From Paraphysomonas bandaiensis (taxonomy: Eukaryota; Protista; Chrysophyceae), in contig CBFFRP010000143.1 of NCBI GenBank assembly GCA_965644295.1, positions 160,701-224,700 on the forward strand: a stretch of 64,000 bases of DNA, written 5' to 3'. Positions 14,214 through 53,994 of the stretch are shown here, one piece after another; the first letter of the stretch is position 1; every line of letters starts with the position of its first letter. Made by a program: the position numbers and the translations under genes. Under the pieces are notes generated by a model. The model searched no databases and had not been told where the DNA came from. It saw only the letters and a list, made by a program, of their open reading frames with translations.

Positions 14214-15089
14214 TGGTGTGTGGCTCACACTCTACTACTCTAGTTACATGCGCAAGCAATAATGAGAACTAGATGGTACTGTAATGAACTATGAGATTAG
14301 GTGAAATTTATATATGCTCAAGATTTGTCGTTAATTTTACGTGACAACACACACAATTGTATATGCAATGTAATAAAAGAGTCTATCTAGTTTGATTACA
14401 ATAAACTTCTCTTAACGATTTTAATTGTGAAAATGGCCAATAGGCATTATATATAGAATATAGAGGCATGCTAGATATCACTTTTACTGCTTTGATTATA
14501 TAAAATGATGAGGCCGAAAGAGCACAGCTGTCTAGTTATTCTAAGATATAATATCTTGTGTATTATACGGGTCACTTCTGCTTGATTGATATAAAACAAT
14601 TACGGATTACGGTAGTTTACCCTCAACAAAGTCCTCGGACTCACGCCTTTTCGTGATGTTCTGGGGGATAAGTACCGGAAACATTTCTTCGGGAAACTAA
14701 CGTGAGCAGCACATATATAGCCAGCAGATGTCTTGTCTTCTCCTATTCAACAATTAGTACAACTGTCACTCTGCAAGCATATTTTATATGCACTTATCAT
14801 ATGTACAAATGTCTTCCTTAATGTGGCGCATCTGAATCCTTTTCATACTCCTTGCCATAAATTAATAATCAAGCAAAATAGCTGTGTTTCCTAATTAATG
14901 TGTATGTGATTATAATTCACCAACTTTAAAATTGAACAAACAACTCATCAATAACCCACATTTTACATATTAAAATACGACTGGTTGATGTCTTTCGTTA
15001 TTATAAATTACATCACATGCCTACATATAATATAGTTTAACACTGGCTATCGACAATGCACAGACTCTAACGACGTCACTTCAAATCTG

Positions 15090-18000
15090 CTACATAGGAG
15101 TAAAGCCGCAGTTATTTTCATTTTCCGTCTCAAGTATGTCATCACTGCAATTGCTACTTGTGAGGGATAACTTTCCCTAATCACACACAGCATAAATCGT
15201 ATGTAAATTCTGTGTTAATCAAATACCTTAGAGCCACTCGTAGAAGTTCCAGAAAACTGGTAATCCGCAGGCATAGGTGCCCAAGCAATGCTGCACTGGC
15301 GCCTCGCCCACTCCTTGTCTTCAATACTATCACCCGCCTGAAAATATATGATGCCAACGGAAAGATTAGTGACACATATACTACCTTATCCTCACTGGCC
15401 ACAGGAAGGGGAATAGCGTCACCAGCGTGAAGTGACAGCACATCTATCGTATGGTCCGCGTTTCCACAATCCAATCCAGTAATAAAGGGGTGCTGAGTTG
15501 CCTCGCGAACACTGTACCTGCGTGACGGTTCTAGAAAAAATATATATATTACGCTCTGAACGACATACGGAATGAATTACATACCTAGCTGCAGCAACAT
15601 ATCTATCAAGTTCTTAGGACTTTCAGGGATTGAACTATCATCCATGTCGGGACAGCCAACGGTGGCGTCAAATTTAACTTCTTTCGACTTCGACCCCGAA
15701 GAGTCCAGAGACTCAGATAATTCGGGATAATCTACACATACTTGGACCAGCACCTGTCATATTAAATTTTATTAAAAACATGTAGTCAAAAATATGCAAT
15801 ACTGAAGCTGGACCTGATGAAACGTAGTTCCGTAATACTTCGGCTTCCCGACAAGACAAAAATAGAGTACGCATCCCAAGGCCCATGAGTCGCCTGCCAA
15901 ACCAGGAATAGACCCAGAAATTAAAACTTCGGGTGGAAGATAGCCTGGGGTTCCTTCGGCATCAACACTACTACTGTCGTTTGAAGAATTTGAGTTCGCA
16001 ATATCGTCAATAGTCAAATCATTCCTATTAGAACACATTAGTATATTGCATTGCAGCAGTCAACAAAAAGTCGTGTGCGTTACGCGCACTATCATGATAT
16101 CAGGAGCAAAATTTGTGAACGGACCTAATTTCTGAGTTATCCCTCCAATCTCCGTCCCGAATATTCTTTATTAACTCGTTGCCTTTCAGTAGCAGAGCAT
16201 GTCCATCACTTGTGACAGCTCGACAAGCACCAAAGTCTGTCAGCTATAAACAAAATTAGCAGACACGTTAGATTATTCACAAAAACAGCTACCTTCACAT
16301 GACCCAAAGACGTTATGAGTATATTCTCTGGCTTAAGGTCATTGAAAGACAAACCCAAGTCATGAATGGAGAGCAGCGCGGCACATATCTCTCCAATGAT
16401 AAATCTTTGCAACAATAATTAAAACTAAAATCATGGATCCGCTCCATATCAAGGTACCTCGAACAAAGTTCATCCAAGGGGCCATTTTTTAAAATCTGCA
16501 GCCAATAGTCAAGGTATACAGTAAACGGGACCACTTACATGTGTATGGAGGTCTCCATTCGCGGCATACTCAAGTACTAAATAGTATCCATCGGTATATC
16601 TGAAAGCAATATTGTTGACACGCAGCTACAGCATCTGTACAATAACCTGAATGCCGAGATTAATCTAGCGATTCCAGGGTGGGAGAGTTCCTGAGTCAAC
16701 AGCCTTGTCAATGGTTGACAAAAAACTTGTGATCACTTACATGGAGAGCAGCAATTTCTCGGCATGCAATATCTATACAACTTCGCCCGATCTGAACCAT
16801 TCTCTTAACAGAGAGAATCTGACTAGCTGATGAACCAAAGATTAGAAATTACAAACAGTATACCACCTTAACAGCATATTCCGGCCATTGAGACCTACTA
16901 GCGTTTGGACCCTATAGAGAAAAGCGTTAGCATCATAGGAAAAGCAAAAGTCATTTACCTTCAGTATACGTCGGCAATACTTTACAGTTCCAAACGAACC
17001 TTCACCCAGTTGTCTATGCAAGTATCACATGCATAAAAGTCAATTATAGAAGTAGGTATTATCTTACTGTCCAAATACAAGATCATGAAACTTCAAGTCA
17101 GGCAGAAGACTTGGCTTTGATGCTGCCTGTTCCCTGACCCAGAATGGCCCGTGCCCATCTTCTTCGTCACCCCCACCGCCATTTAGACGGCATCGCTCAA
17201 TGTACTCCATCACAACATTGGCTGCTGTGAATACATAGGTATCATAGGTGTAGACGAATGGTATAACTCTTACCCGAAATGACTTCGTTTTTAGCTGATT
17301 CCATTGACTTTACATCACCTATACTTGATGTACCAGTGGGTTCCTTTTGGTGCTTGAATGCCCAGGGCGCAACTCCAGTTATAGTAACAGGAGGATTTTC
17401 GCCTGGCTTAATTGGACCTGCAGATTTCATCATACACCACACGTTTTGCCATCACATTTTTATATCACCTGGGTGAGCTTGCTTAATGGTATTGGGATTA
17501 AGCTTCGAACGTGGGAAAGTTGACATCGGCGAAAATTTTCCAGGGGGACGCTCTGAACAACTGGACGAGGACTCCGTTTTCTGCCCTGAGATTGTGTCTA
17601 CATAAAAAGGCGGCAAATTCCATGAATTTAAAGACACGTAAATAGCTAATGTTCTCACCACGTTCTGGGGTCACTTCCGACGGAGGTCGCTTATGAGCCC
17701 GCACAGAACGAATGGATGAAGGGGGTAGACTTGGGTTACTCTTTTTTTCCGAGGGAGCCGTCACACTGGGCGTCTTTCCAATCAGATGCTCCGCAGCAGC
17801 ACAAAAAGCATCATCGTCCATTTCCTGCGAAATTTTACATAATCTGCACCACATCACAATGGGTAAAGAGACCTTCAACTTTTTAAGAACAATTGCTGTC
17901 ATTTTATTCACAGTTTGGTTCCAGAAGAGCTTACCACCGCGATATAGAGGCGGGAGAAAGCCAGATATAGCTTCAAATGCATGTCTAGATATGTGGTCAA

Positions 18001-19332
18001 TAAATATTTTATTTCTATAAGTAAAGCATATAAGTAAGGCTGAGATTCACATAGACAACTCTTACCTGAACATTTGGAGTGTACGTTGGAGGGGAATCAT
18101 ATTATCATGACTAAGAAGACTCTTTAATCTGCTCTATTAAAATATTTATACAAAAGTAAACACAAACTGCCGAGGTATACCATGACGTATGGAAATACAG
18201 CGTCAAACTCCACGTCCGAAGACATGCCCAGTAGCTTTTCCAACTTCAAGTCTATCATTAAAAAGGCATGGAAATCATGATGAACATACCTCATGTACGA
18301 AAAGTACTTCTTTGGGCGTATTGGAATTGAATCCCTCAGGCCAGAGTGATGTCACGAGAACGCGAATAGTGTGAGCTAGCATTGTGTTCGGTTCTTGCAT
18401 GTGCTTTACACCACCATGCATTCTCTCCCATTCAGCCAGCCGGACAAGACAGAGCACCAAGGCTTCGTGATAGGGCTGTGGGATGTCAAGCCTGTCAGTC
18501 TACATGAACAGCGCTTACCTGCACTACAGGAAGCTGGTCCCGCCATTCAATCATTCCGTTGGGAGTGTGTAAAGGCAATAGAACTTTCACAAGCAAATCC
18601 CACTGCACGCGATGACAATCAGGTCGGTATTGTGTAGTTCTCGCATTTGCAATCGATTGATCTGTCATTCCTGCTACAATCTTGGCGACAAGCTGGGACA
18701 GTCAGATTATAACATAAATACTGACATTAAATAATAGTAAACCTTAAGATGTGGTCGAATATCAACACTCTTCAACAAATCTGGAGAAGCGGAATATCGG
18801 ACAAGCTTCGAACCAACCATCAGTCTAATGCTCCCACGTAGATCGATACGATGCCTGTAAACCCACATTAACACATTCCCAGTAGTAACACTAGCCTCTT
18901 TCTGTCCACGATCAAAGCTTTTTAGCACTGAAATTCGAAATAATAGATGAAAAATGAACTCAATTTGAACATAGATTCTTACACTTTAAACAGAATTCCT
19001 TCGATATGCTGTTGACTATGGTGGATATCGCAGAGCTCGTGTTGGTCTCAGGAAACTTCTGTAATATTTCCCAACTATTGAGCGCGAGCTCCTCTATCTG
19101 TGAATGCCTCTGGTTCCAGCAGACCTCCAGTGAAGCCATCACTGATATCACCACTTGTTCGATATCCTGATAGTCTCTTATCTGTATGGGGTATGAGATG
19201 TATCTATCATCATATCATCTGACTGCAGTGTACCTCCATAGATTTAATCATATCGTACAAGACAGTCATGTCCTCTTCACTGGGCATGCGCTCAATGCGA
19301 CTCAACAGAGATATCAACTCCTCTCTGTTCAT
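15090..19332 (-). CDS. PP2A B56/B'-like domain fused to a PDK1-like (AGC-related) Ser/Thr kinase, many introns
   Basis: Kinase: LGEGSFGTV, EYAVK, FNDLKPEN, LTDFG, EGTPGYLPPE, DSWALGC. N-terminal B56-like segments: LLVKVLLPLH, YHEALVLCLVRL, LWPEGFNSNTPKEVLFVHE, LYRGGKLFWNQTV..EMDDDAF. The linker exons splice in frame between the two parts. Confidence 0.85.
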
Positions 19333-21000
19333 TGATATGAATAGCTCTTCTCGACTGATGCAGTTGTTATCTCCCGTCAACTCCGACGAGCAGATCTATA
19401 AGTGAATCTACAGAGAGCTCAGCCGGCTGCTGATCGCTCCACACACACCAGAATAGTGGGAGGAATTCCTCCACAGTACTCCACTGTATCTACAGCAGTA
19501 CAATTGGAGTACTCCGGTACAGTACTGTATATGTGTGTATTTGAATAGAACACGAATTTTTCTCATCTACACCATATACAGCGCTATATACGGTGATACG
19601 GTGGTGTCCATGTTCAGATAAGGACCCTGCACCTACTCTGTATATCCACACAGCAACACACACTACGATCTGATAGAGGCAGACACAGATGATCTCACTG
19701 TACAATGGCCTGCAGCAAGGACAAGATCCCATTGCTCGACTGTGATTGGCATCGCAGGACATGCTGTAATCACCTCGTCACCGTTAGTTTCTGCTACAAG
19801 GCACAAGGGTTCAATACCTTTGAACTGATGACAGCGTGGTGATTGTTGCTGTGAGGGTATGTGGTGATCGTAACCATACACAGCCGCATTGTGTCCAATT
19901 GATTTTTCTTTCATGTTCCGTTTGATTGCGCGCATACGAAGCGCTGTCAAGTCTATAGACAAGTGGGAACTATAAGATGCATGTCCGTACATATTTTGAC
20001 TTTTACCACTTTATAACACTGTTTACCAAGGTGTTTGAATGGTGTTTGTTTGAATGGTGTTTGAATGGTGTTATTTATATTTTATACAGCAACACACTGT
20101 GTTCTCTTGTTATTGATGCTTTCTCAATTACTGGACGGAGATAACCCGCCAGTTCCTCTCGATTAGCCCTTTTTGTGTTTCCTATTTGCCATAGGCGACT
20201 GAACATGTCGACCACTGTTAACTTGAGAGAGGGATGATAGAGGGGGAATGGATAAGAATTCTGATGTAAAGATCATAGCAGCGAGTTCAGCAAGGAATAG
20301 ACAAAAGGAGATAATTCAGTTGCAAGAATACAATTATCACGTAGAGCAAGTGCTTTGAGATTTGTCAATCGCAGAGACTAAAAGAAGAAATGCGTCATAT
20401 TTTATAAGTGTTGGTAAAATCTGAGCAGCGAGTAATGCATAGGCAAGATGCCTTGGTATCTCAAAATACTCGTTTTTAGTGTGCTCTATATTTTACATAC
20501 GAATGGCTTATATTCGCACATGTTGTACAACTATATATAGATGGAATTGCTGTCATAGTGTAGGATATTTACTATTAGGAAACAGAATGGAAATATAGCA
20601 AATATAGGACTCTCCTGTCGAATGCGATAAATTATAAATATATATTGGACTGGTTGAAAGTATCATTTTGTATTATTTAGGCTTTACGATGATAGGAATA
20701 CATGATATAAGCGTAAATAGGTGGTACTTGTTTCCAGTACAGGAGTGTGTCGTTGTTGGCCTCGGGGCATATTAACATAATCGTCGCTGTAAAATAAGTC
20801 TTGTAATGAAACGAGACTTCTCGAGATAACTGAGATACCCATACAATGAACCCAGGCGTCACTCGTCCTATGGTGTAGAGGGTGTACAGTGTACAAAAAC
20901 CTTTCATGGTTTAATAACTATTTAGCTAGGTATTCTAATCATTATTTTATAGAAACAAGTATTTTGGTGACGCCAACTATTACCGTTATTTATAACTTAA

Positions 21001-35496: not shown

Positions 35497-36440
35497 ATGA
35501 AGAGATTTTTAGTGAGCGTCCAGTACAATGGTTCATATTATAGTGGCTGGAGCAGGCAAGTGCCAGAAAAGTACGTGAAACCTGGTGTTGAGCACGTCCT
35601 TCTCACATCTTTGGAGAAGTTTCTTGGAAAAGAAAATTTCAAAAACTTCTTCGGCTCCAGCAGAACGGACCGGGGCGTCCATGCGCTACGAAATTATTTT
35701 CATGTTGACATTGATAGTCAAAATATGAGAGCAGATATCAATGGAAGAGTTGTCAAGAAGGCACTGAATCACTTTCTATGTAATGAAAATGTTACAGTCA
35801 TTGATTGTAAACAAGTGCCAGTAGAGTTTAATTGTCGAACTAATGCAACATCGCGATCGTATATGTACCGTCTAATCAATACTCCAAACAATTTCGCGTC
35901 ATCCAAGCAATGGGTATTTCAAGATGACTTGGCTTGGAACGTGAAGGGGTTAAATATTGAGTCAATGAATCGTGCAGCTGGGCTACTGACTGGGATTCAT
36001 GACTACTCTTCTTTTCGAAATGCGGACTGCCAATCAAGCAGTCCTTATAGACATATTTGGTCAATCAAAGTGAATGAGCACACCCTGGCCGGAATACAGA
36101 AATCAGCAGATGGCGAAGTTGAAACTGCACGTGCCTACGATCCTTATCTCATGGTGCGTTTACTTATGTAACAGGCCTTATTCTAATTCCTTGTTTACAC
36201 GAGCAGGGTGACAATCGCCTCGTGACAGTCACAATAACTGGAAATGCTTTTTTATATAGAATGGTGAGGAATATGGTTGGAACTCTTGTACATGTTGGAC
36301 TCGGGAAAATCCCTGCGGAGGAGATGACTCGAATTTTGGAGGCCAGAGATCGCAGTCTCGTTCCTGCTGCTGCTCCTGCCAGAGGTCTTTTTCTATGTGA
36401 TGTCACCTACAATGAAAAAGACATTGAGTTATATAACTAA
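35497..36440 (+). CDS. truA: tRNA pseudouridine synthase A family (PUSL1-like)
   Basis: YNGSYYSGW, SSRTDRGVHA (catalytic Asp), GIHDYSSFR, GNAFLYRMVRNMVG, AAAPARGLFL. One intron near 36154-36206; a short upstream exon from 35408 is possible. Confidence 0.92.
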
Positions 36441-41815: not shown

Positions 41816-42280
41816 AGTGAAAGCTCTCTGTTATTTATATTATGTAAGACTGAAACCTAATTGATATGATTTTAATGCATATCGCTATCTAATACATCAA
41901 CAGAGATATCAACCCTGCCTCTTATTGGCACCCAAGTTATGGATATATAGTTGTATCAGGGTCGTGGAGCTCCGCCTTAATTTAAACAGCCAGAATTCCG
42001 TCCGAATTCTCGTTTTAACATCCGCATGTACGTATACAGCACAGCAGTATGCGTATGCTGCTGTATATATAGCTGTGTACTACTGCATAGATACATACGT
42101 ACCTATACAGAGATGTTAAGGGACTGAGCTGTTCGGATATCCGGGGTACGGTACGATATACAGGACTACAGCTATATATACCGTATACCCCACACTGGCG
42201 TGCCAAGACTGCTTGGAGTGCTGTCAGCTGCAGGTGTATGTAGACGGCACAGATCTGCAGAGGAATCTCCTCTCATCTCA

Positions 42281-45200
42281 ATGAAAGAATGCATCTTTAT
42301 GGCCCATTGCACTGTTATCATGCTGCTGGTGCTGCTGGCCTGTGCAGCTGCGATGAAACAGTCCGAATGGAGTCCTCGTCCGGCCTATGCAGAGTCCACG
42401 TGGAGTATATCGCTTAGTTTAGATGATACAGCCACTGTATGTGAACCGATTGGTCTTCTTCACTCTGTCAATGTTTCTTCTGTTAGTGTTGATGTTAGGA
42501 ATGCACTCACTAATGAAAGTTATGGTGGCGATCGTATTTTAAAGTTTGTTCGAATCTCACCACCCGGCGACCATGATGTAGAGAGTGCAGTTTGTCTTGA
42601 AGTTGAAGGTTCAAAGGATGAATCTTTTTCTGAATACTGTGGTACTGTTTATTCTCTTTCTGCATGGGATGTGGTCAGACATTTTATTGATATTGAAGGC
42701 CACTGGAGCGTATGTTTTAAACTTGCAAATGAGTTTGTTGTGTATGCTATGCCACGACAACATCATTTCTCATATAATCATTCTGGTCAGTATGTGTTTA
42801 CGAATTCCGTTAATGTAACTAGCTTTATCACTGTTACTTCCCTCTTGGAGTGGGATGAGCCAGCCCCCAACAATGGCAAAGATATATTAATTCAGCTTGA
42901 GTATGCGGCTACCCCTGTGGTAGTGGTAGTAGACTCTGTATTGGACTCTCTCCCCGATGCCTCGCTTTGTAGCCCTAACGGTAGTGCCACGAGTGGGTCG
43001 TGTACTCTTCGATCGGCGATGGCGTACTGTATCTCGATTTCTTCCACATCAGAGAAATGCATCATTACAATGCCCTCGGATGAGACAATCTTTCTCAACG
43101 ACACTCTTGGTGAGTTGGAAATAGAAGATGTCACCGTCGGTATTACGTTAGAGGGCAATGGTTGCACTCTATCTACCAAATCAGCAGAGCGGAATTCGGT
43201 TAGAATGCTCAGGGCTCTAGTATCCACTTCTCATGTTCTTCACTTGGCCCTGAAAAACTTGAATGTAGAGCAATTCGGAGATGGATCGACAGATGGAGGT
43301 GCGATATATCTCGAAGGGGTTACATCAGTTCGTTTTGATAATGTATCATTTGTACAAAACTGGGGGCTGCAAGGTGGATCAATATATGCGACAGATTGCA
43401 GCAACGTTAGTATCACAGACAGTCACTTTATGATGTCGAAGGCCGAAGGCGATGGCGGTGCAATATATGTTGATGAATACTGTGATGATTGGAGTATCAC
43501 CAACACATTGTTTATCAGTAATAACGCCTCTACTGGAAATGGTGGAGCTGTGTGCTCTAACTCCCATAACAACTACATGTGTTTCAGTGGCTGTGTCTTT
43601 ACTGGTAATGAAGCAAGTTATGGCGGTGGTGTGTCATTTGAATATCTATCAAATGACATCGATATATTGAATACTTCGTTTTCAGATAATGTGGGCACAG
43701 AAGGTTCTAGTATATATCTGAATAATATCATCGACACTGTTTCAATCGACAATTGTAGTTTTGTTGGGGACCTTGCCCAGATTGGTGTTCTGAGTGTTAC
43801 TTCTTCGTGCTCTGACGTGTGGATAACAAATAGTGTGTTCCGAGATAATATTGCGACTTCCTTTAGTGTCATTGTTCTTTCGATTAGTAATGATCACATT
43901 TATATGGAAGGCTTACTATTCGAATCAAACATTGTATATCAAGGGGCAGTGGGAATTCTCTACAGTAATTCGTATGTAACTATAACGCGCTGTGAATTTA
44001 GAGACAACACCGGTTTAATAGGTTCCGCCCTATATGTCATGACGGGAAACTTTGATTACACTGTTGAAGATACCACTTTTACTAGGAACAGTTGTCAGGG
44101 CTCTGGCGCTGTATATGTAGCTGATACTAATACTTATAATTCATTTCGAAACTGTACGTGGACAGATAATGTAGCCGTCTCTGGGGCAGGTGGAGGTCTT
44201 TTATTTGGAGCGATGAATAATTTTCTCTCCATAGAAGATTGCAGATTTTATAATAACTCTGCGGATACTAATGGGGGAGCATTGGCTATACTTGACCAGC
44301 ACTATGACATCAGCCTATTGAATTGTACTTTTGAAGCGAACAATGCTGGACTCTACGGTGGCAATGTCTATATTTCGCAAATGAATAATGCTATTAGAAT
44401 TGAGAAATGTGGTATGAGCAGCGGAACTGCAGCATATGGAGGAGGAATTCGATTTGAATACAGTAATTCCATGATTAACATGATGGATTGCATGTTTCAG
44501 CATAATGCTGGTATGGAACACTCAGCGTTGTCTTTGGGTAAACTGAATACCCAGGTTAAGATTACAAATTGCAATTTTGTAAACAACTCTGCTTTGATTT
44601 CTGGTTCGGGTGGTGCCATTGGTGCCACAGAGAGTAATGCATTTGTTGAGATTCATGACTGTCAGTTCATTAAAAATATGGCACCTCTCCATGGTAGGAA
44701 GTCTTCGACCTATACTCATAGGATTAGTCATTGATAATGTTTTTTAGGCGGCGCTATAGTGCTCTCGAAAAGCAACACATATATTAGCTTGCGGAGATCC
44801 TTATTCGAGGCAAACGAAGCAGCTTACAATGGGGGAGCTATTTTTATGGACGGCAACAATTACTATATCGAGGTATCACATTGCACCTTTACCAGAAACA
44901 TCGCGACCTATGACGGTGGAGCAGTGCATGTCGCGTACCATGGTGTTCAAATATACTTTGATTTTTCAGTGTTCTTGTTTAACAAAGCTATGAATGGAGC
45001 AGGGATCTGTATCAATAGTCAAAACATTGACGTTTTTGTTGAGAATAGTGTCTTTTTTACAAACGTAGTTAGTGATAAAGGTGGAGCTGTATTTATTAAA
45101 GATAGCAATATCCGAGTATTTCTATTCAATAACTCGATTGAGTTTAATTCAGCCCTCTACGGTGGTGGTATTTCCATGCGCAGTGGAAATCAAATGACAA

Positions 45201-48200
45201 ATATTGCGAACTGCACATTTATGAGCAATACTGGACGCAGTGCTGGAGGTGCTGTGTATTCCTCTATTTCCAACAACAACTTTGTCATTGAGCAGTGTAC
45301 TTTAAGTCAGAATGACGCGGCTTATGGAGCAGCTGTTATACTTGGAGAAGATCATCGAAATTTCACCATGAGAAATTGCAATGTTTATGGAAATAAAGCA
45401 ACATATGGGGCAGCGGTATACATATCTAGTTTTAACTCAGGCATTTCCATTGCAGCATGCAATATTACCGGAAATGAGGCAACTTCGAGTGGGGGTGGAA
45501 TATATAGTTTAGCTGAGAACATTGTGGTTGAGTACTCAATCGTAAGTGAAAACAGGGCACAGATTGGAGCAGGCATGTTTGTTGATACAAACGAAATAAT
45601 TCGAATTTACCGCAGTGATTTTGTTAATAATACTGCCTCTGCACAAGGTGGTGGTATTACTGCTACAAAATGCACATTTATTTATGTACTGGAATCCAAA
45701 TTTTTGCGTAACAGTGGGATGAGTGGAGGTGCTATTGTACTCATCAAGAATAACGCCATTCGTATCAGTGAAAGTGATTTCGTATTAAACAATGGTTCGC
45801 TCGGTGGAGCAATACTAAGCACTTATTCAATCAATGTGTCTTTTAATGGCTGTGTATTCGACAGCAATCTCGCTGAGACTGGAGGAGCGTGTTATTCCAC
45901 AAACGATGAACTATTAGAGTACGTTGCAGTGGCTTTTTATAGTAATTCTGCTGATCAAGGTGGTGCTCTTTATCTGCGACAGTCAGATAATTGCAGTGTC
46001 ACATCTTGTGTTTTTAGCAATAATAAAGCTTCAACTAGTTCAGGGTCTGCTATTTGGATATCGGATTCGCCGTCAAGGCTGACCACTAGTCAATTCGTTA
46101 GTAACAGTGCCAACAGTGGCGGTGGTACCGTATACTGGTCTGCTTTGAGTGGAATGATGGAGCCAGACGGTTTGCGTACAGATAGCAATTTATTCAGAAA
46201 TAACTCTGCTGCATATGGAGCCGACTGGGCCACCGAAGGCATCAGAATCGATATTGATAAGAGCGTTATAAATGTTGATCAATACAGTTCTCCTATTCCC
46301 GAATTGAGTGTGGTGATGCAGGATTACTATGATCAAACTGTCGTAACTGAATCTGCGGCTTTAGTTGAGATATCTATTCTCTCCGAATATTTGACGCCGG
46401 AAATGTGTTACGACGGTGTGGGATACATAACAGGCGATTACGTTGAGTTTATGGTTGGCGGAGTTGCTAATATTTCGAATCTTCAAGCGTATTGTGCTCC
46501 TGGTTATACTTTAGGTCTTAATGTGTCGACCTCATCTTTTTGCGTGGAATCGGTGAGTTTGTCTCTTACAGCATCATTTCTATTGAATTTCAGGGAATGT
46601 TCACGTGGCGAGTACTATAGTAGTAAAGCATGCTTATTGTGTGGTAATGGTACGTACAGTCTAAAGGAAAATGCCGATTTATCGGTGACGCAGTGTGTTG
46701 AATGTCCACAAAAAGCAGATTCTTGTTATGGGGACCAGTTGAAGCTGAAAGAAGGTTACTGGCGTATGAATTACGATGCGACGAGTATTCTTGCATGTCC
46801 ACTTGACAAGAGAAGCTGCATTGGTGGTTGGGGTACAGGGAACGATCTCTGTGCAGAGGGTCATATTGGCGCCCTATGTGCCGTGTGTGACGCATCGTAT
46901 TACTATAATTCAGCTTCAGGGAAGTGTGAAAAATGCGAGGAGTCAAGCTGGGGTGACCCACTGATGTTTATTGGTGTCATTATTGTCATAGCAACTCTTT
47001 TATTTCTCGTAGTAAAGAGATCTCCCGATTCATCACCGACTAGCTTATTGAAAAAAGTGACCATCGAAGTAATGACCTGGTGGGGTGTACGGTTTGAGAA
47101 CAGAATGGAATTAGATGAATATCTTGCCATCCTAACACGCCGTCTTCAATCCCGGCTGAAGGTCTACGTGGTGTTTTATCAAATCGTGTCATCACTGCCG
47201 TTTGTATTGTATGATTCTAAGTTTCCTCTGTCCTATATGGAGATTGCTTCGGTGCTGAATGTGGCGAGCCTTACTGCCTCTCACAGTTCCCTTGTTGGGT
47301 GTAGTTTCGCGAAACTGGACTATGTTGATTTCCTTATGATTGACACTCTATACCCGATTGCGTTAAGTCTCTGTATGTGGTGCGTTTGTAGAATACATAC
47401 GTTTCTAAAGTGTAGAACTGGTCTTGCATATGGCACACATGAAATAGTGAAGCTGCAGTCTAATTATTTCTCAGTATGGTTGATGATTATATATCTCTTA
47501 TTACCAGGAATATCAACAACTATATTTCGAACCTACAGCTGCCAAAATATTGATCCAGATAATGTGGAAGAAGGTTCTAATTGGTACATGCGAGCAGACT
47601 ACAGCGTATCGTGTTCTTCTAACAGATACTTCTTTGGAGCATCATGGGCGACAGTTATGCTTGTAGTATACCCCATCGGGATCCCATTTTTATTCTTTGT
47701 GCTTCTCTATCGGTCCCGTGATACGATTAAGAGTAGACACATGGTTTCGAGAAATACAGAATGCGAATCGATCAGGGAAGTAGAACTCAAGCCTTTACGA
47801 ATTTTGTATGACTTTTACAAGCCTGAACGATGGTGGTGGGAGCTTGTTGAAACATCCTTTCGTTTAAACTTTACCGGGCTATTGATAGTTGTTAAACAAG
47901 GATCTGCTACCCAAGTCATCGTGGGGATAGCAGTTGCAATTGCTTATATTAAATTGTACCATGTGTATATGCCGTATTCAGATTCATTCATCGGATCTAT
48001 TAAAGAATTGACCATGTGGCAACTATTTACGGTGCTGCTTCTTGTGCTTATTGTCAAAGCTGATTTTAGCGCTGTTAGCGACGCGAGACTGGTTGTTGCA
48101 TTCATATTTGCCGTCTTTATCAATCTCATATTCGAAATGGTATTGGTATTCATTCGTGCTGTTAATAAGGATGGTGCAGCAAGTAAGTGTGATATTTTAG

Positions 48201-48325
48201 GACATAATGATGACGTCATTGTGCACAATGAAGTTGGGAACGAAGTTTTACGGCGTCGTTCTCCAAAGGCTGATGTCCAAAAAGCTGTAGAGCTTCAGGA
48301 ACGACAGATATCAACTTGCTTTTGA
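42281..48325 (+). CDS. ~2000-aa surface protein: signal peptide, CSLREA-like motif, parallel beta-helix (Pmp-like GGA/FxxN) repeats, Cys-rich region, multi-TM C-terminus
   Basis: VIMLLVLLACAAA signal; SCTLRSAM; many FxxN..GGA(I/V) repeats; GYWR..ACP..C.GG..C.EGH.G.LC.VC; LKVYVVFYQI, RADYSVSC, YPIGIP, WWWELVE; about 6-7 hydrophobic segments. Single intron ~44693-44748. Start could be 42281 or 42299. Confidence 0.88.
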
Positions 48326-48703: not shown

Positions 48704-51700
48704 TAACAGAAGTTGACATTATTTGCTAAGGTTTACTATTCTCAACTGATAAGATGAAATTATAAACATTACATGATAAAGAACCTAAGTTGTGTTCGAT
48801 GTGTTCAACACCATTCATTTACTACTATAGTGTACAACCACACACTCAGTCATCGTATCCTGTATAGTCATCCACTTCTACTTCAGTTTCATACTACATA
48901 ATATAATGTACTAATTACATATATATCTTTCGATCCTTGCATCTCACATAATACTGCACTCAATTGCAAGTATATAGAATCTTCAGATCTCAACACTCCC
49001 CCTCAATTGAGTGTTGTACTATGACGCCTCCCAGCTATTGAATGCCTGAGATAAAAAAATTCTTGACAGTAAAATAGACTCATCTCTAAGTCTAAACCTC
49101 TGTCTAAAAAACTCAGTACCTACTTGCGCCTTCTTTTATCCCTTGGTCCCTCATTAATCACTTCAGTGGAACTCTTAACTTTCTCTCCAAGATTTCTCTT
49201 TCTCTGCTCCATATATGATAAACCAACCAATGACTTTGTATAAATATCTGCTGCTTGTTGCGATGTATGCACATGCACTAACTTAATCGTATTGAACTGA
49301 TTGGGATCCACGTGCTCTCTCACCATGTGATACTTAATCTCAATGTGCTTCGACTTCTTGTGAAACACTGGGTTTTCGGCCAAATCCTGGGCACTCTGAC
49401 TGTCGATGAAGAATGGTGTGGGTTTGATGAGCCTCAACTTAATCTCACCCGTCACCCCCCGAACCCATAGCACTTCTTGGAGACCCGAGTAAATACACTG
49501 ATACTCAGACTGCATGCTTGACGTTGCCACTGTCGTCTGCAGTTTGGACTGCCAGACTATAGGCCCTCCCGCTGCAAACCCAACGTACCCCGACGTGGAC
49601 TTCCTGGAGAGCTGATCTCCCGCCCAATCCGCGTCAGTAAACATATGGAAGTCGAACCGTCTACTCCCATATTGAATCCCTTTGTCAATAGAACCACGAA
49701 TATATTGCCATACATGTGTTAATAGCTTGCATACTTCAATATTCACCTTATTACTGAACCGAGACAGTACTCCCACTGCATAGGCAATATCCGGCCTCGT
49801 GTTCATCGATAGATATAGTAATGCACCTATCAGCGGCCGATATGGGAAGTTATCTACTATAAGCTGTTCCTCCTCGGTATGCTCATGCCGCGCCCCTTTT
49901 GCCACTAAATCCATTGCTTCCGCCGGTAGAGGACTCTTCCGTACCTTTCGCGGTGGCCCAAGATACTTTTCAAACTTTTCTAAGATCTTAGCCGCATATA
50001 CTGATTGGTCAAGACGAATATACTCTGGCGTTCTTGTGACTCGAACATTCAGAAAATGTTCCATCTCGCCCATATCCTTCATATCAAACCGGGCACACAG
50101 TTGAGCTTTAATATCCTTCACTATGTTGACATCACGACCTAACACTAGGATATCATCCACATATATCGTTAATAATATCAATTCATCGCCCTTATACTGA
50201 TAATACAAACACGGGTCTAATACACATGGTTTAAAATGCATAGATCGTATGAATTTATCCAATGTTTTCCACCACGACCGCGGGGAACTCCGAAGCCCGT
50301 ATAACGACTTCTTCAACTTAAAGCAGTACCCCTCAGGCAGCTGAAAGTCCGGAGTTGCCTTCATATATACATCCCCCTCTATATCTGCATATAGAAATGC
50401 GTTAGACACATCCAGTTGATGAATTACCATGTTCATCACGAAAGCTATGGCGATTAACAGTCGCACTGTTACCCCCTTAACAACGGGTGCGAAATGGTTC
50501 GCCCAACCACTCGACTGCTGTCCACAACCGATTGCTACAAGACGAGCCTTATATCGGCGGACCTCTCCCTCCTTATCGTACTTCTTTCCATAGACGTACT
50601 TGGAGTGCAGTGGGACGACTCCGTCCGGTATACGAGTCACCTCCATGGTATCTCGCTTCGCCAAACCCTCTCGCTCTACACGGCGAGCTCGTCTCCACTC
50701 CCTGTGCTCGGCACTCTCCAAGGACTCACGATGTGTCTGAGGCACTGTCGACTCTTCCGCTGACATCCACACTGAGTCTGCCTCCTGTAAAAGGTCACTC
50801 ACATCACTCTCATCACTCAAATGATGGATTTGTCCTAACACCGACACATTCGTTACCGTCCTTGGAGTTCTTGCGCGTTTGCCGTGCGGATGATTCTCGG
50901 CAGGGGTCCCTTCCCCCGAAGGTAATGCTGAGTCAGCCTGGGGCTGCACCTGCCCACTTTCCGACTGCTGTGGCACCACTCCGCTGATACCGCCGTCACG
51001 GTTGTCAGTAACTCTGGCCCTAACCACCCTCTGCGCAAGATCCTCTGTCATCTTCTTGATGTCAGCAATATGAATAGGAGTTTTATCCTCCACTTGAACC
51101 TGGTTACCAGTAACCAACGACCGGTATCCCACAATAAGTCCCTTCCTTATCACCACTCTGTTAGTCTTGTATAGCAGACCACCATCCTCATGGTGCTTTC
51201 CGATAAGATACTCAAACTCACCCGGTTGACGAGCCTCGGGATCTATAGCCACTTGAGCCTCCTCCAGCTCTCTATAATAATCCTGAGACCTCTCAGGTAC
51301 CGATTCATCAAATAATACATGTACAGAGTGTACTACGGTGTCCCCCACTAGCACCTTGTATCCTTTTCGATCAGCTGGATACCCTATGAAATAACCTGTC
51401 ATTGCTTTGTCCTCCCAGTCCTTCCTCCTGTCGGCCTTGGGTGTTAGCACATATGCTTTGCACCCCCATTTCCGTAGCCACGATAGGCTGGGAACGCTCC
51501 CCCCTGGGACACACTCATATGGAGACATCCATCCTTGCCACGTCCGAGTTGGCATTCGTCGCACAATGTAACATGCAGTTTGATAAGCATCAGACCAGAA
51601 CGACTTTGGAAGTCCAGATGCCGTCAACATCGTCAGTGTCATCTCCCCAATTGTTCGGAATTTCCTCTCAGACACCGCGTTGAGCTCTGGCGTGTCTCGT

Positions 51701-53994
51701 GTTGTATGTGACACCCGAGTCCCATATCGCTGCAACAGATACTCTCTTATCTGCTGACTAATAAGTTCGGATCCTCCATCGGCATGATACTCCACTATAC
51801 GGTTCCACCCCTCGTACTTCACTAAGTGGACCTCGCACAAGTGTCGTAGACATTTGAACACCTCCTCTCCGCTTCGAGTCCTCAATCCATATTCCCATAT
51901 CATCTTTGTTGCTAAGTCCGTAAATAGGAGCACGTACTTATACCCTTGTCTGGATTCACAATTGAGATAGACGGAGATGTCCGCTGTTACTCTTTCCAGG
52001 AACCTGACTGCGCTTAGCTCTTCGTTGTCCCGTGATTTGAACGAATGCCTGGTTATCTTCGCCTTGGCACACCATTTACACAGGGGTTTCTTGCAACTCT
52101 TCTCCTTTGCCTTCGAAAGGTGATGTCGTTGTAGTCCTGATCCTCTGAATAACATGTGTCGGTGAGCTTCTAATAACTTCGATTTCGAGACATGTCCAGT
52201 ACGCTCATGTAAGCGATCCAACGCATCTTGTCCTGTATTATCCGACAAATTTACCTCCTCCATCTGATTGCACATAGACACATTTGGCAGATTTAACACC
52301 TCCATCAAGTCCACATACGGCATCCCTCCATGCTCATCGTACTCTCCAGTCAACACCTCGTTTCCAGAGTCCAATTCCACGATTTTAGGCTTTCGAAGCA
52401 GTTGTAATCCGTATCCCATTGATCTCAGCATCCCTCCTGACACAATGTTCTTCACCGCTTCTTCACTAACTCTGATGTCTCTCCATTCCCCGAATGTACC
52501 AGCCCCCTGTGTCTCCAATTGAGAACCCTTTCTAGTTAGTTGGATTGCCCCAAACTCAGGAGTAAATGACTCCAGTGCAATTTTATCCTTTACTATAAAC
52601 AGTCTTTTACTTGCACAACTGTCCAGATATACACGAGGTTCTTCCGACGTATCCACCGATAGCAAAACCTCTTCTCCAAACATATTCGCTTCATCATCCG
52701 ACGACTCTCCGTCGTTGACGTATTTCTTCCATTCTGTCTCGAATTTCCTGTTCGATTTTCGAGGATTCTCATTATCCGGGTTTTTTATGTTCTTCCGTTT
52801 TTTCGACTTGCACTGTCGGGCTTTATGACTAAAATCTCCACAGATATGACAACCAGTATAATCCTTTGATCCTGGCTGCTGCACACTCTTCGAAGCCTTT
52901 TCCTTTGTCTTCCCTTTTCTTTTGAACTTATCCATTTTTCTTTGTCGTTCCTTAGCATAACAATTCGCTGCTACATGTCCCTTCTTCCGACAAAATGAAC
53001 AAACCACTGGCTCCTTCGACGCCGTAAAATTGATCTCTTCAGATTTGTCTCCCTTTAGTTTCTTCAGCTGCGTCATAGCCTCGTCATACTCTTCACAAGC
53101 CTCTTTCACCGAATCAAATGTAGTTGTTGCTTTAGGCATCATCGCTACCGACATCCATAAATCATGTAATTCCTCTATCTGCAGCGCTGCTTTTATCTTT
53201 GCTAATTTACTTGCCTCTGTCTGCGGTTGTCCCAATTTTATGAGCTTCTGGATTATACCGTTCAGTCGATCTACCCCAACAGACACCTTTTCCCCCGGCC
53301 TTATTTTGAACGAATGGTATTCTGCCGTAGTCTTCTCCAATACAGTCCCAATCTCGCCTCTGAACCTATCAACCAGTGTCTGAAGGAGCTCACTGGATAA
53401 CACCTCCTTAGCAGGATCATCAGCAGGTAAAATTGCCTTCCCCTCCAAATATTGATTGGCTACCTCCAACACATCAGGGTCATGCTCGCAAGCCTCCCAA
53501 ATAGTACTAACACAGGTATCATTACGCTCTCTCCATGACTCTAAATTCCTTCCTCCGGCTGGCGGGTCCTCCAAGCCAAGATGGTTTCGGTTTTTCTTCA
53601 TTAGATGCATCTTGATTTTTCTCGCTGAATAGTCTGCTTGGTTCTTGTCAAACCGTAGCTTCTTGTCATCTTCCCCATCCCTACAACTAGCATTCGCTAC
53701 CATAACAGAAGTTGACATTATTTGCTAAGGTTTACTATTCTCAACTGATAAGATGAAATTATAAACATTACATGATAAAGAACCTAAGTTGTGTTCGATG
53801 TGTTCAACACCATTCATTTACTACTATAGTGTACAACCACACACTCAGTCATCGTATCCTGTATAGTCATCCACTTCTACTTCAGTTTCATACTACATAA
53901 TATAATGTACTAATTACATATATATCTTTCGATCCTTGCATCTCACATAATACTGCACTCAATTGCAAGTATATAGAATCTTCAGATCTCAACA
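48704..53994 (-). mobile_element. Intact full-length Ty1/copia LTR retrotransposon
   Basis: Identical 292-bp LTRs at 48704-48995 and 53703-53994; TSD CACAT at 48699-48703 and 53995-53999; PBS TGGTAGCG directly after the 5' LTR; purine tract (GA-G-run-AG) directly before the 3' LTR. Confidence 0.98.
49120..53718 (-). CDS. Copia gag-pol polyprotein (2 zinc knuckles, protease, GAG-pre-integrase, integrase, RT, RNase H)
   Basis: CSFCRKKGHVAANC, CHICGDFSHKARQC, YLDSCAS, HERTGH..CKWC, ADGGSE, PELNAVSER, YKARLVA, LDVSNAFL, LKKSLYGL, IYVDD, TDADWAG, KHIEIKYH; INT precedes RT (copia order). Confidence 0.97.
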   Translation of the reverse strand: MSTSVMVANASCRDGEDDKKLRFDKNQADYSARKIKMHLMKKNRNHLGLEDPPAGGRNLESWRERNDTCVSTIWEACEHDPDVLEVANQYLEGKAILPADDPAKEVLSSELLQTLVDRFRGEIGTVLEKTTAEYHSFKIRPGEKVSVGVDRLNGIIQKLIKLGQPQTEASKLAKIKAALQIEELHDLWMSVAMMPKATTTFDSVKEACEEYDEAMTQLKKLKGDKSEEINFTASKEPVVCSFCRKKGHVAANCYAKERQRKMDKFKRKGKTKEKASKSVQQPGSKDYTGCHICGDFSHKARQCKSKKRKNIKNPDNENPRKSNRKFETEWKKYVNDGESSDDEANMFGEEVLLSVDTSEEPRVYLDSCASKRLFIVKDKIALESFTPEFGAIQLTRKGSQLETQGAGTFGEWRDIRVSEEAVKNIVSGGMLRSMGYGLQLLRKPKIVELDSGNEVLTGEYDEHGGMPYVDLMEVLNLPNVSMCNQMEEVNLSDNTGQDALDRLHERTGHVSKSKLLEAHRHMLFRGSGLQRHHLSKAKEKSCKKPLCKWCAKAKITRHSFKSRDNEELSAVRFLERVTADISVYLNCESRQGYKYVLLFTDLATKMIWEYGLRTRSGEEVFKCLRHLCEVHLVKYEGWNRIVEYHADGGSELISQQIREYLLQRYGTRVSHTTRDTPELNAVSERKFRTIGEMTLTMLTASGLPKSFWSDAYQTACYIVRRMPTRTWQGWMSPYECVPGGSVPSLSWLRKWGCKAYVLTPKADRRKDWEDKAMTGYFIGYPADRKGYKVLVGDTVVHSVHVLFDESVPERSQDYYRELEEAQVAIDPEARQPGEFEYLIGKHHEDGGLLYKTNRVVIRKGLIVGYRSLVTGNQVQVEDKTPIHIADIKKMTEDLAQRVVRARVTDNRDGGISGVVPQQSESGQVQPQADSALPSGEGTPAENHPHGKRARTPRTVTNVSVLGQIHHLSDESDVSDLLQEADSVWMSAEESTVPQTHRESLESAEHREWRRARRVEREGLAKRDTMEVTRIPDGVVPLHSKYVYGKKYDKEGEVRRYKARLVAIGCGQQSSGWANHFAPVVKGVTVRLLIAIAFVMNMVIHQLDVSNAFLYADIEGDVYMKATPDFQLPEGYCFKLKKSLYGLRSSPRSWWKTLDKFIRSMHFKPCVLDPCLYYQYKGDELILLTIYVDDILVLGRDVNIVKDIKAQLCARFDMKDMGEMEHFLNVRVTRTPEYIRLDQSVYAAKILEKFEKYLGPPRKVRKSPLPAEAMDLVAKGARHEHTEEEQLIVDNFPYRPLIGALLYLSMNTRPDIAYAVGVLSRFSNKVNIEVCKLLTHVWQYIRGSIDKGIQYGSRRFDFHMFTDADWAGDQLSRKSTSGYVGFAAGGPIVWQSKLQTTVATSSMQSEYQCIYSGLQEVLWVRGVTGEIKLRLIKPTPFFIDSQSAQDLAENPVFHKKSKHIEIKYHMVREHVDPNQFNTIKLVHVHTSQQAADIYTKSLVGLSYMEQRKRNLGEKVKSSTEVINEGPRDKRRRK

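Follow-up and report, generated by a model that had tools for sequence, protein, structure and literature searches.

Kinase-fold proteins are held beside a protein phosphatase 2A (PP2A) regulatory subunit in two described kinds of non-covalent assembly. In STRIPAK, the B''' subunit striatin holds GCKIII kinases. BubR1 or BUB-1 is bound to the B56 subunit through an LxxIxE motif (PMC4930772, PMC7787666). In both, phosphorylation and dephosphorylation of shared clients are coupled, as we propose here for a gene on the minus strand of a 64,000-nucleotide stretch of Paraphysomonas bandaiensis DNA (contig CBFFRP010000143.1, positions 160,701 to 224,700; hereafter the window, numbered from its first letter). 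The product of this gene carries a B56-type domain in its N-terminal half and a kinase most similar to PDK1 in its C-terminal half. It differs from the BubR1/BUB-1–B56 and STRIPAK assemblies in that the link is covalent, within one polypeptide, and in that the partner is PDK1-like; no such covalent pair was found in the literature searched. The fusion was proposed in an original prediction made from the letters of the window, which is evaluated below.

PP2A-B56 and PDK1 both act on the activation loops of AGC kinases, meeting only by transient docking in the organisms studied so far. A fusion of the two that is conserved across stramenopiles and alveolates argues for a functionally meaningful pairing, and it offers several handles: a kinase seemingly built to resist its own phosphatase, a B56 groove with changed specificity residues, and an invariant linker motif. 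No paper describing a B56–kinase fusion was found in the full-text literature, including studies of oomycete, diatom and brown alga kinomes, a search whose coverage is incomplete and which is not proof of absence. One database entry is already named as a fusion, and the value of the present work therefore lies in pointing out and characterizing the family rather than in discovering the architecture.

Results

The fusion gene (minus strand, 19332..15090) forms a single 995-aa reading frame in a model of 25 exons and 24 introns that was rebuilt by hand and checked by script. All 24 introns are GT-AG, phase-compatible and 43–100 nt long. The coding sequence (15090..19332, minus strand) starts at the ATG at 19332, 5' of which an in-frame stop is present, and ends with the stop codon at 15092-15090; the bounds originally predicted, 15090-19332, are exactly these stop and start codons. 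Translation of 14900-19500 contains all of the peptide strings that had been quoted, on the minus strand and in the order given. The claim that phase-compatible GT-AG introns lead without a stop from the B56 part into the kinase is likewise borne out by the model.

Expression of this gene as one mRNA is documented by public sequencing runs that carry the stretch at shares expected of spliced RNA, four of which were compared with 14800-19700. Run X1 yields a spliced contig of 3143 nt and run X4 one of 3155 nt, both placed on 14978/14981..~19391, and the spliced mRNA that they define, introns removed, extends over 14978..19391 of the minus strand, with a depth of zero beyond this span. The 15 contig joints listed (15175/15226 through 17415/17467) all coincide with model junctions; the match rests on these 15 of the 24 joints, the other nine being reported without positions. 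Contig pieces for exons 2–5 agree with the exon boundaries of the model, and those introns of the linker between the two domains that have listed joints (17224/17274 and 17415/17467) are removed in frame. A polyA metatranscriptome contig of 1962 nt (X6) starts at the 3' end, takes in the kinase and the linker and reaches into exon 9. The 3155-nt contig is accounted for by the 2988-nt open reading frame (ORF), ~59 nt of 5' untranslated region (UTR) and ~109 nt of 3' UTR, which leaves no room for a second gene in the transcript. In genomic DNA of relatives, too, the two-domain architecture is encoded by a single intronless ORF, namely that of P0152 on a contig of 1.45 Mb (1004 aa) and that of P0045 on a contig of 12.8 kb (903 aa). 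The fusion is thus one real, expressed gene encoding one 995-aa protein, chance being excluded, and the proposal that both domains share one gene and one mRNA is confirmed by spliced contigs from two samples that span both halves.

Two details of the transcript contigs deserve mention. The X1 and X4 samples carry different organism labels, and at one base, 15145 in the last coding exon, the C of the window is replaced by G in X4. The difference is at strain level and shows that the two assemblies come from independent samples. The X6 contig ends near the exon 8/9 junction (17826-17880) in 11 loose letters that match exon 8 for 7 nt and then diverge; this end could be an alternative junction, a related-strain variant or a contig-end error.

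The N-terminal domain (aa 1-385, exons 1-9, 17786..19332, minus strand) was identified through its relatives. Pfam searches with single N-terminal exon pieces were nearly blank, the only match to B56 being that of exon 8, below threshold (E 0.038, 13.4 bits). Against PDB sequences, the top six matches of exon 8 are all B56, with weak E values of 0.12–0.27, and exon 5 gives no match. Because single exons are too short and too divergent, homology was established via relatives and a profile. The nearest relative, P0057 (42% identical), or family alignments served as input for Pfam, AlphaFold2 (AF2) and Foldseek in place of the spliced window protein, which was itself analyzed by alignment and profile scoring. 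A search of a protein library with exons 8–9, read through an in-frame 48-nt intron, returned 27 proteins, the long ones carrying both Pfam B56 and Pkinase. Examples are P0011 (943 aa; B56 1.9e-45, 156 bits; Pkinase 4.9e-46, 158 bits), P0018 (658 aa; B56 1.5e-17; Pkinase 3.6e-29) and P0025 (721 aa; B56 7e-25; Pkinase 3.8e-48). Relatives exceed the Pfam B56 (PF01603) threshold at 64–156 bits versus a cut-off of 25. As for the proposed Pfam check, full-length relatives match both families and window exons 19 and 21 match Pkinase, while the B56 exon pieces of the window stay below threshold.

A family N-terminal profile, built from the domains of 20 relatives with the window protein left out, matches 14 PDB sequences, all of them B56 chains, with E values of 1e-60 to 1e-48 over B56gamma residues 135-413. 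The window protein fits this profile end to end (aa 7-393, 330 bits), its residues ~74-380 aligning with B56gamma ~141-404; a significant B56 sequence match is thus obtained via profile and relatives. In AF2 models of P0057, the first ~370–380 residues are modeled as helical with confidence. When modeled on its own, the N-terminal 380 aa of P0057 is all helical, with a predicted local distance difference test score (pLDDT) of 89 and a predicted template modeling score (pTM) of 0.85. A Foldseek search of the PDB with this domain model returns B56 chains as its top 23 matches, with template modeling (TM) scores of 0.65–0.79 and 345–419 aligned columns. Since these columns include the first ~100 aa, that segment is still folded as the first pseudo-HEAT repeats, and the eight-repeat solenoid is present in the model of this 42%-identical relative. 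An ESM-Atlas feature search returns only B56 clusters. These data show that a B56-type (PP2A B') pseudo-HEAT domain, complete though divergent, makes up the N-terminal ~390 aa, in agreement with the B56-like region originally predicted.

Compared with canonical PP2A B56/B' subunits (human PPP2R5A-E; PDB 2NPP, 2IAE, 8U1X), the domain has the same pseudo-HEAT solenoid fold, and the profile match spans HEAT 3–8 and the C-terminal helix. The motifs LLPLH, YH, WP..PKEV..L.E and WN.T are conserved, as are the groove residues Y190, R197, R201, I231 and G234 (B56gamma numbering). The fusion differs from canonical B56 in being joined to a kinase, in HEAT 1–2, which are unrecognizable by sequence, in carrying Met for H187 and Trp for R188, and in the absence of K240 and H243.

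These substitutions bear on peptide recognition. In B56gamma, the hydrophobic pockets of the LxxIxE groove are lined by H187, Y190, I227 and I231, and the Glu is held by K240 and H243; the H187A and R197A mutants no longer bind LxxIxE (BubR1), and the K240A and H243A mutants bind it more weakly (PMC4930772). We mapped the groove positions through the P0057/B56gamma alignment and the family alignments. The HEAT-3 helix that lines the groove (aa 118-134, 18824..18874, minus strand), located from these alignments and the residue roles in PMC4930772, has the Met and Trp just mentioned and keeps Y190, R197 and R201. Across 55 family members, Y190, R197, R201, I231 and G234 are invariant or nearly so. 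Of the four residues of an intact pocket (H187, R197, K240 and H243), the window protein keeps R197 only, with K240 and H243 falling in an unalignable loop. As judged from the residues, the groove is still under selection and its acid-binding part is gone. Given Met at H187, Trp at R188 and the absence of K240/H243, canonical LxxIxE recognition by the window protein is unlikely, and the recruitment of LxxIxE-motif substrates, which the original prediction had proposed, is doubtful.

The two domains are joined by a linker (aa 386-555, 17115..17785, minus strand) that is defined by low conservation and occupancy in the family and by disorder in the corresponding stretch of the relative's model. 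Its first ~85 aa are poorly conserved, with low occupancy in the family alignment, and residues 375-466 of P0057 have pLDDT values below 50 and are disordered in the AF2 model. Within the linker lies the motif PPVTITGVAPWA (aa 479-490, 17359..17394, minus strand), whose consensus, PPxTxTGVAPWA, is almost invariant across the family. The window protein has a single copy. In about nine of the 27 aligned members (P0155, P0157, P0055, P0032, P0159, P0071, P0164, P0158 and P0152), the motif occurs twice, a few dozen residues apart. This behavior is typical of a short linear docking motif, and PPxTxTGVAPWA probably serves in docking or autoregulation. No intramolecular docking of the motif is seen in the AF2 model of P0057, where its pLDDT is ~30–35.

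Together with an N-terminal extension, the kinase domain (aa 556-900, exons 12-23, 15475..17114, minus strand) is defined by the Pkinase matches, the motif alignment and the best matches of the relative. It contains a GEGSFG Gly-loop, the YAVK Lys, an alphaC Glu (REIAALH), FNDLKPEN, DFG and YLPPE. The Gly-loop, the VAIK Lys, the alphaC Glu, the catalytic Asp, the Asn of LKPEN and the Asp of DFG are all retained in the window protein and almost invariant across 55 relatives. The catalytic Lys is preceded by WPEYAVK, a family trait, and an EGT motif is found family-wide in the alignment. Against PDB sequences, PDK1 is the best match of the P0057 kinase domain (1e-30), ahead of SGK1 and Aurora A, and it is also the best Foldseek match (TM 0.85–0.88). 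With PDK1 as the closest characterized kinase and the catalytic residues intact, the C-terminal half is, as read from its sequence, a PDK1-like AGC kinase with a non-RD loop. The motif alignment and the sequence and fold matches of the relative thus agree with what had been proposed for this domain, namely a PDK1-like, non-RD kinase with PPE for APE.

The catalytic loop FNDLKPEN (aa 698-705, 16323..16346, minus strand) stands in place of HRD, and PPE in place of APE, both located as described in the original prediction. All 27 aligned members have a loop of the form [FY]-[NGSTA]-D-LKPEN, the Arg position being occupied by N, G, S, T or A. YLPPE predominates in the family, a minority having A, S or L at the first Pro. 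The activation segment begins with DFG (aa 718), ends with YLPPE (aa 783-787) and covers 15928..16237 of the minus strand; it includes a family-wide insert of ~40 aa between DFG and E-G-T, with a conserved LRDGDWR motif that reads IRDGDWR here (16162..16142, minus strand). The equivalent of PDK1 Ser241, four residues before the conserved GT, is Asp in the window protein and Arg in most family members; two residues further along, a Glu is conserved. Neither an RD-type HRD loop nor a phosphorylatable T-loop Ser at the Ser241 position is therefore found in this kinase.

Comparison with PDK1/PDPK1 (fungal Pkh), the best sequence and structural match, shows that YAVKIL, LKPENIL, DFG and GT..Y..PE are common to both. 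The fusion kinase departs from PDK1 in having FND rather than HRD, in the loss of the Ser241 equivalent and in the activation-loop insert. It also departs from PDK1 in its C-terminal tail (aa 901-995, 15093..15474, minus strand). Pfam finds no family, and so no PH domain, on the pieces of exons 22–24 of the window, nor does a PH domain appear in the Pfam lists of any fusion relative. The place of the PH domain is taken by a conserved tail with the pattern W.RRQ.S..WAPMP..Y (W-x-RRQ-x-S-x-x-WAPMP at 15310..15269, minus strand), ending in an acidic-Phe motif, I.ET..E...F (15137..15102, minus strand).

Two word-index searches raised the family to ~60 proteins with PF01603 and PF00069 in stramenopiles and alveolates; the protein searches never returned the window's own full-length protein. 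By BLASTP, the window protein is 42% identical to P0057 over aa 20-962 (E = 0) and matches more than 25 other members over the full length, collinearly, with E values of 1e-176 to 1e-108. It contains all of the family signature motifs (PPxTxTGVAPWA, WPEYAVK, [FY]xDLKPEN, LRDGDWR, YLPPE and RRQxSxxWAPMP), which together with the collinear domains place it in the B56–kinase fusion family. Members occur in brown algae (Ectocarpus, Scytosiphon and Hapterophycus), in the stramenopiles Tribonema and Chrysoparadoxa, and in alveolates (Amoebophrya, with fragments in Symbiodinium). A further member comes from a Bolivina transcriptome and is possibly a contaminant. The Tribonema minus protein KAG5176227.1 (UniRef100_A0A835YLX0) is named by NCBI '3-phosphoinositide-dependent protein kinase Serine/threonine protein phosphatase 2A, regulato...'. 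It was thus correct to suspect that annotation of other stramenopiles might already include such fusions, this entry being named as a fusion and the three brown algae and Chrysoparadoxa carrying the fusion too.

In a tree, the window protein groups with P0057 inside the family with a support of 100. The two belong to a 14-member environmental clade, apart from the brown-alga/Tribonema and alveolate clades. Domain order, full-length collinearity and signature motifs are common to the window protein and known members such as KAG5176227.1. The window protein differs from them in its divergence, its nearest relative being P0057, from a sequencing-run assembly, and in its Met at H187, where about half of the members keep His. 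The window gene adds a new, divergent member to a family that is catalogued yet unstudied. Full-length collinearity and motifs common across clades support, at the level of sequence, a single origin and selection. Three further proteins of the B56 subfamily, P0010 (581 aa), P0020 (459 aa) and P0171 (754 aa), match the B56 domain of the fusion with no kinase domain shown; they could be kinase-less paralogues or truncated gene calls.

Discussion

We propose that the B56 domain is still a PP2A regulatory-subunit (B') module, which would hold the kinase beside the PP2A core. The kinase would also be held beside the peptide ligands of the modified HEAT 3/4 groove, such that writer and eraser act on the same clients. 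Because PDK1 writes AGC-kinase T-loop sites and PP2A-B56 erases them, these sites are the obvious candidate clients. Family-wide loss of the RD Arg and of a phosphorylatable T-loop residue may render the kinase independent of activation-loop phosphorylation and immune to the tethered phosphatase. We assign this proposal, a T-loop-independent kinase held beside the phosphatase and the groove ligands, a probability of about 0.5.

Several observations weigh against it. Association of the B56 domain with PP2A A/C is a prediction, kinase activity is predicted from residues, and the structural results come from models of a 42%-identical relative rather than of the window protein. No sequence similarity to B56 is detectable in the first ~70–100 aa (HEAT 1–2) when the family profile is compared with the PDB. 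The H187 position is His in 23 of 48 members, the R188 position is Trp in most, and the K240/H243 positions lie in a variable, gapped loop that is not conserved in the family. Full-length P0057 models with a pTM of 0.70. Because this value exceeds either domain's own contribution, the B56 and kinase domains are predicted to pack in a fixed mutual arrangement, and in that model such packing could occupy a PP2A-binding face, favoring an intramolecular role.

Some of these observations favor the alternative that the B56-like domain no longer joins PP2A and now serves the kinase as a regulatory or docking domain within the same molecule. It would bind the protein's own linker motif, or substrates, via the remodeled HEAT 3/4 groove, making the protein a kinase with a B56-fold adaptor. 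The fixed domain arrangement implied by the full-length model and the unrecognizable HEAT 1–2 sequences fit this alternative. So do the loss of the acidic-residue-binding part of the groove, with its hydrophobic and backbone-binding spine kept, and the invariant, sometimes duplicated linker motif, in which the I/V-T-G-V-A-P register resembles LxxIx(E) with Pro for Glu. However, AF2 leaves that motif undocked, and the motifs best conserved in canonical B56 (LLPLH, YH, WP..SPKEV..L.E and HWN.T) have been retained, or have hardly varied, since a very ancient divergence, which is more conservation than upkeep of a fold usually demands. A docking role is also compatible with PP2A binding, the two not being mutually exclusive. 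We consider this adaptor alternative the main rival, to which we would give about one chance in three. Doubt about the kinase half leads to a different alternative, in which that half serves as a scaffold or pseudokinase. The protein would then act solely as a PP2A B' subunit of an unusual sort, its kinase-fold appendage binding substrates, a situation comparable to that of the B56 partner BubR1. Both the His and the Arg of HRD are missing, PPE replaces APE, and the activation loop carries the ~40-aa insert. Nevertheless, every residue needed for phosphotransfer is present here and nearly invariant in the 55 relatives. Moreover, AGC kinases normally have F or Y where HRD has its His, as in the YRD of PKA, and non-RD kinases are generally active. 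A pseudokinase is therefore improbable. Least probable of all is an artefact of the gene model, in which an adjacent B56 gene and kinase gene would have been merged by read-through of the spacer. The middle of the linker is indeed poorly conserved, and contigs alone do not prove transcript ends. Against this stand spliced contigs from two samples, differing at one base, that cover both halves; a transcript length equal to that of the ORF and short UTRs; linker introns with listed joints that are spliced out in frame; relatives in which genomic DNA has both domains in one uninterrupted ORF; and ~60 proteins that share the architecture and the invariant linker motif. On the strength of the spliced contigs and the intronless genomic ORFs of relatives, we reject the two-gene artefact.

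Returning to the B56 domain as a PP2A module, a more specific version can be put forward tentatively, and we hold it to be somewhat less probable than the adaptor alternative. The family may be a hard-wired PP2A/PDK1-like holoenzyme of SAR (stramenopile, alveolate and rhizarian) protists, in which B56 would dock the A–C core, the kinase would be T-loop-independent and thereby able to persist beside the phosphatase, and PPxTxTGVAPWA would be a new docking motif, for the remodeled groove or for PP2A-C, that gates the switch. If true, the protein would be a natural Rosetta-stone fusion for the link between B56 and PDK1-AGC signaling that is seen non-covalently in yeast and animals. In animals, PP2A-B56 opposes PDK1-site phosphorylation of Akt and S6K, and in yeast, Rts1 acts in the Pkh/Ypk network; both are consistent with the Rosetta-stone reading.

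Other Features of the Window

Three other regions of the window contain long ORFs. On the minus strand, an ORF of 1532 aa runs without interruption through 49120-53718 and encodes integrase core, retroviral SH3-like and RVT_2 reverse-transcriptase domains; its product is apparently an intact Ty1/copia-type retrotransposon polyprotein. Two adjoining, very long ORFs (844 and 1188 aa) lie at 42200-48325 on the plus strand; their sole Pfam signal is a Chlamydia polymorphic-membrane-protein repeat (PF02415), both possibly belonging to one large, repeat-rich surface protein. A 224-aa ORF at 35497-36171, also on the plus strand, matches tRNA pseudouridine synthase (PseudoU_synth_1).

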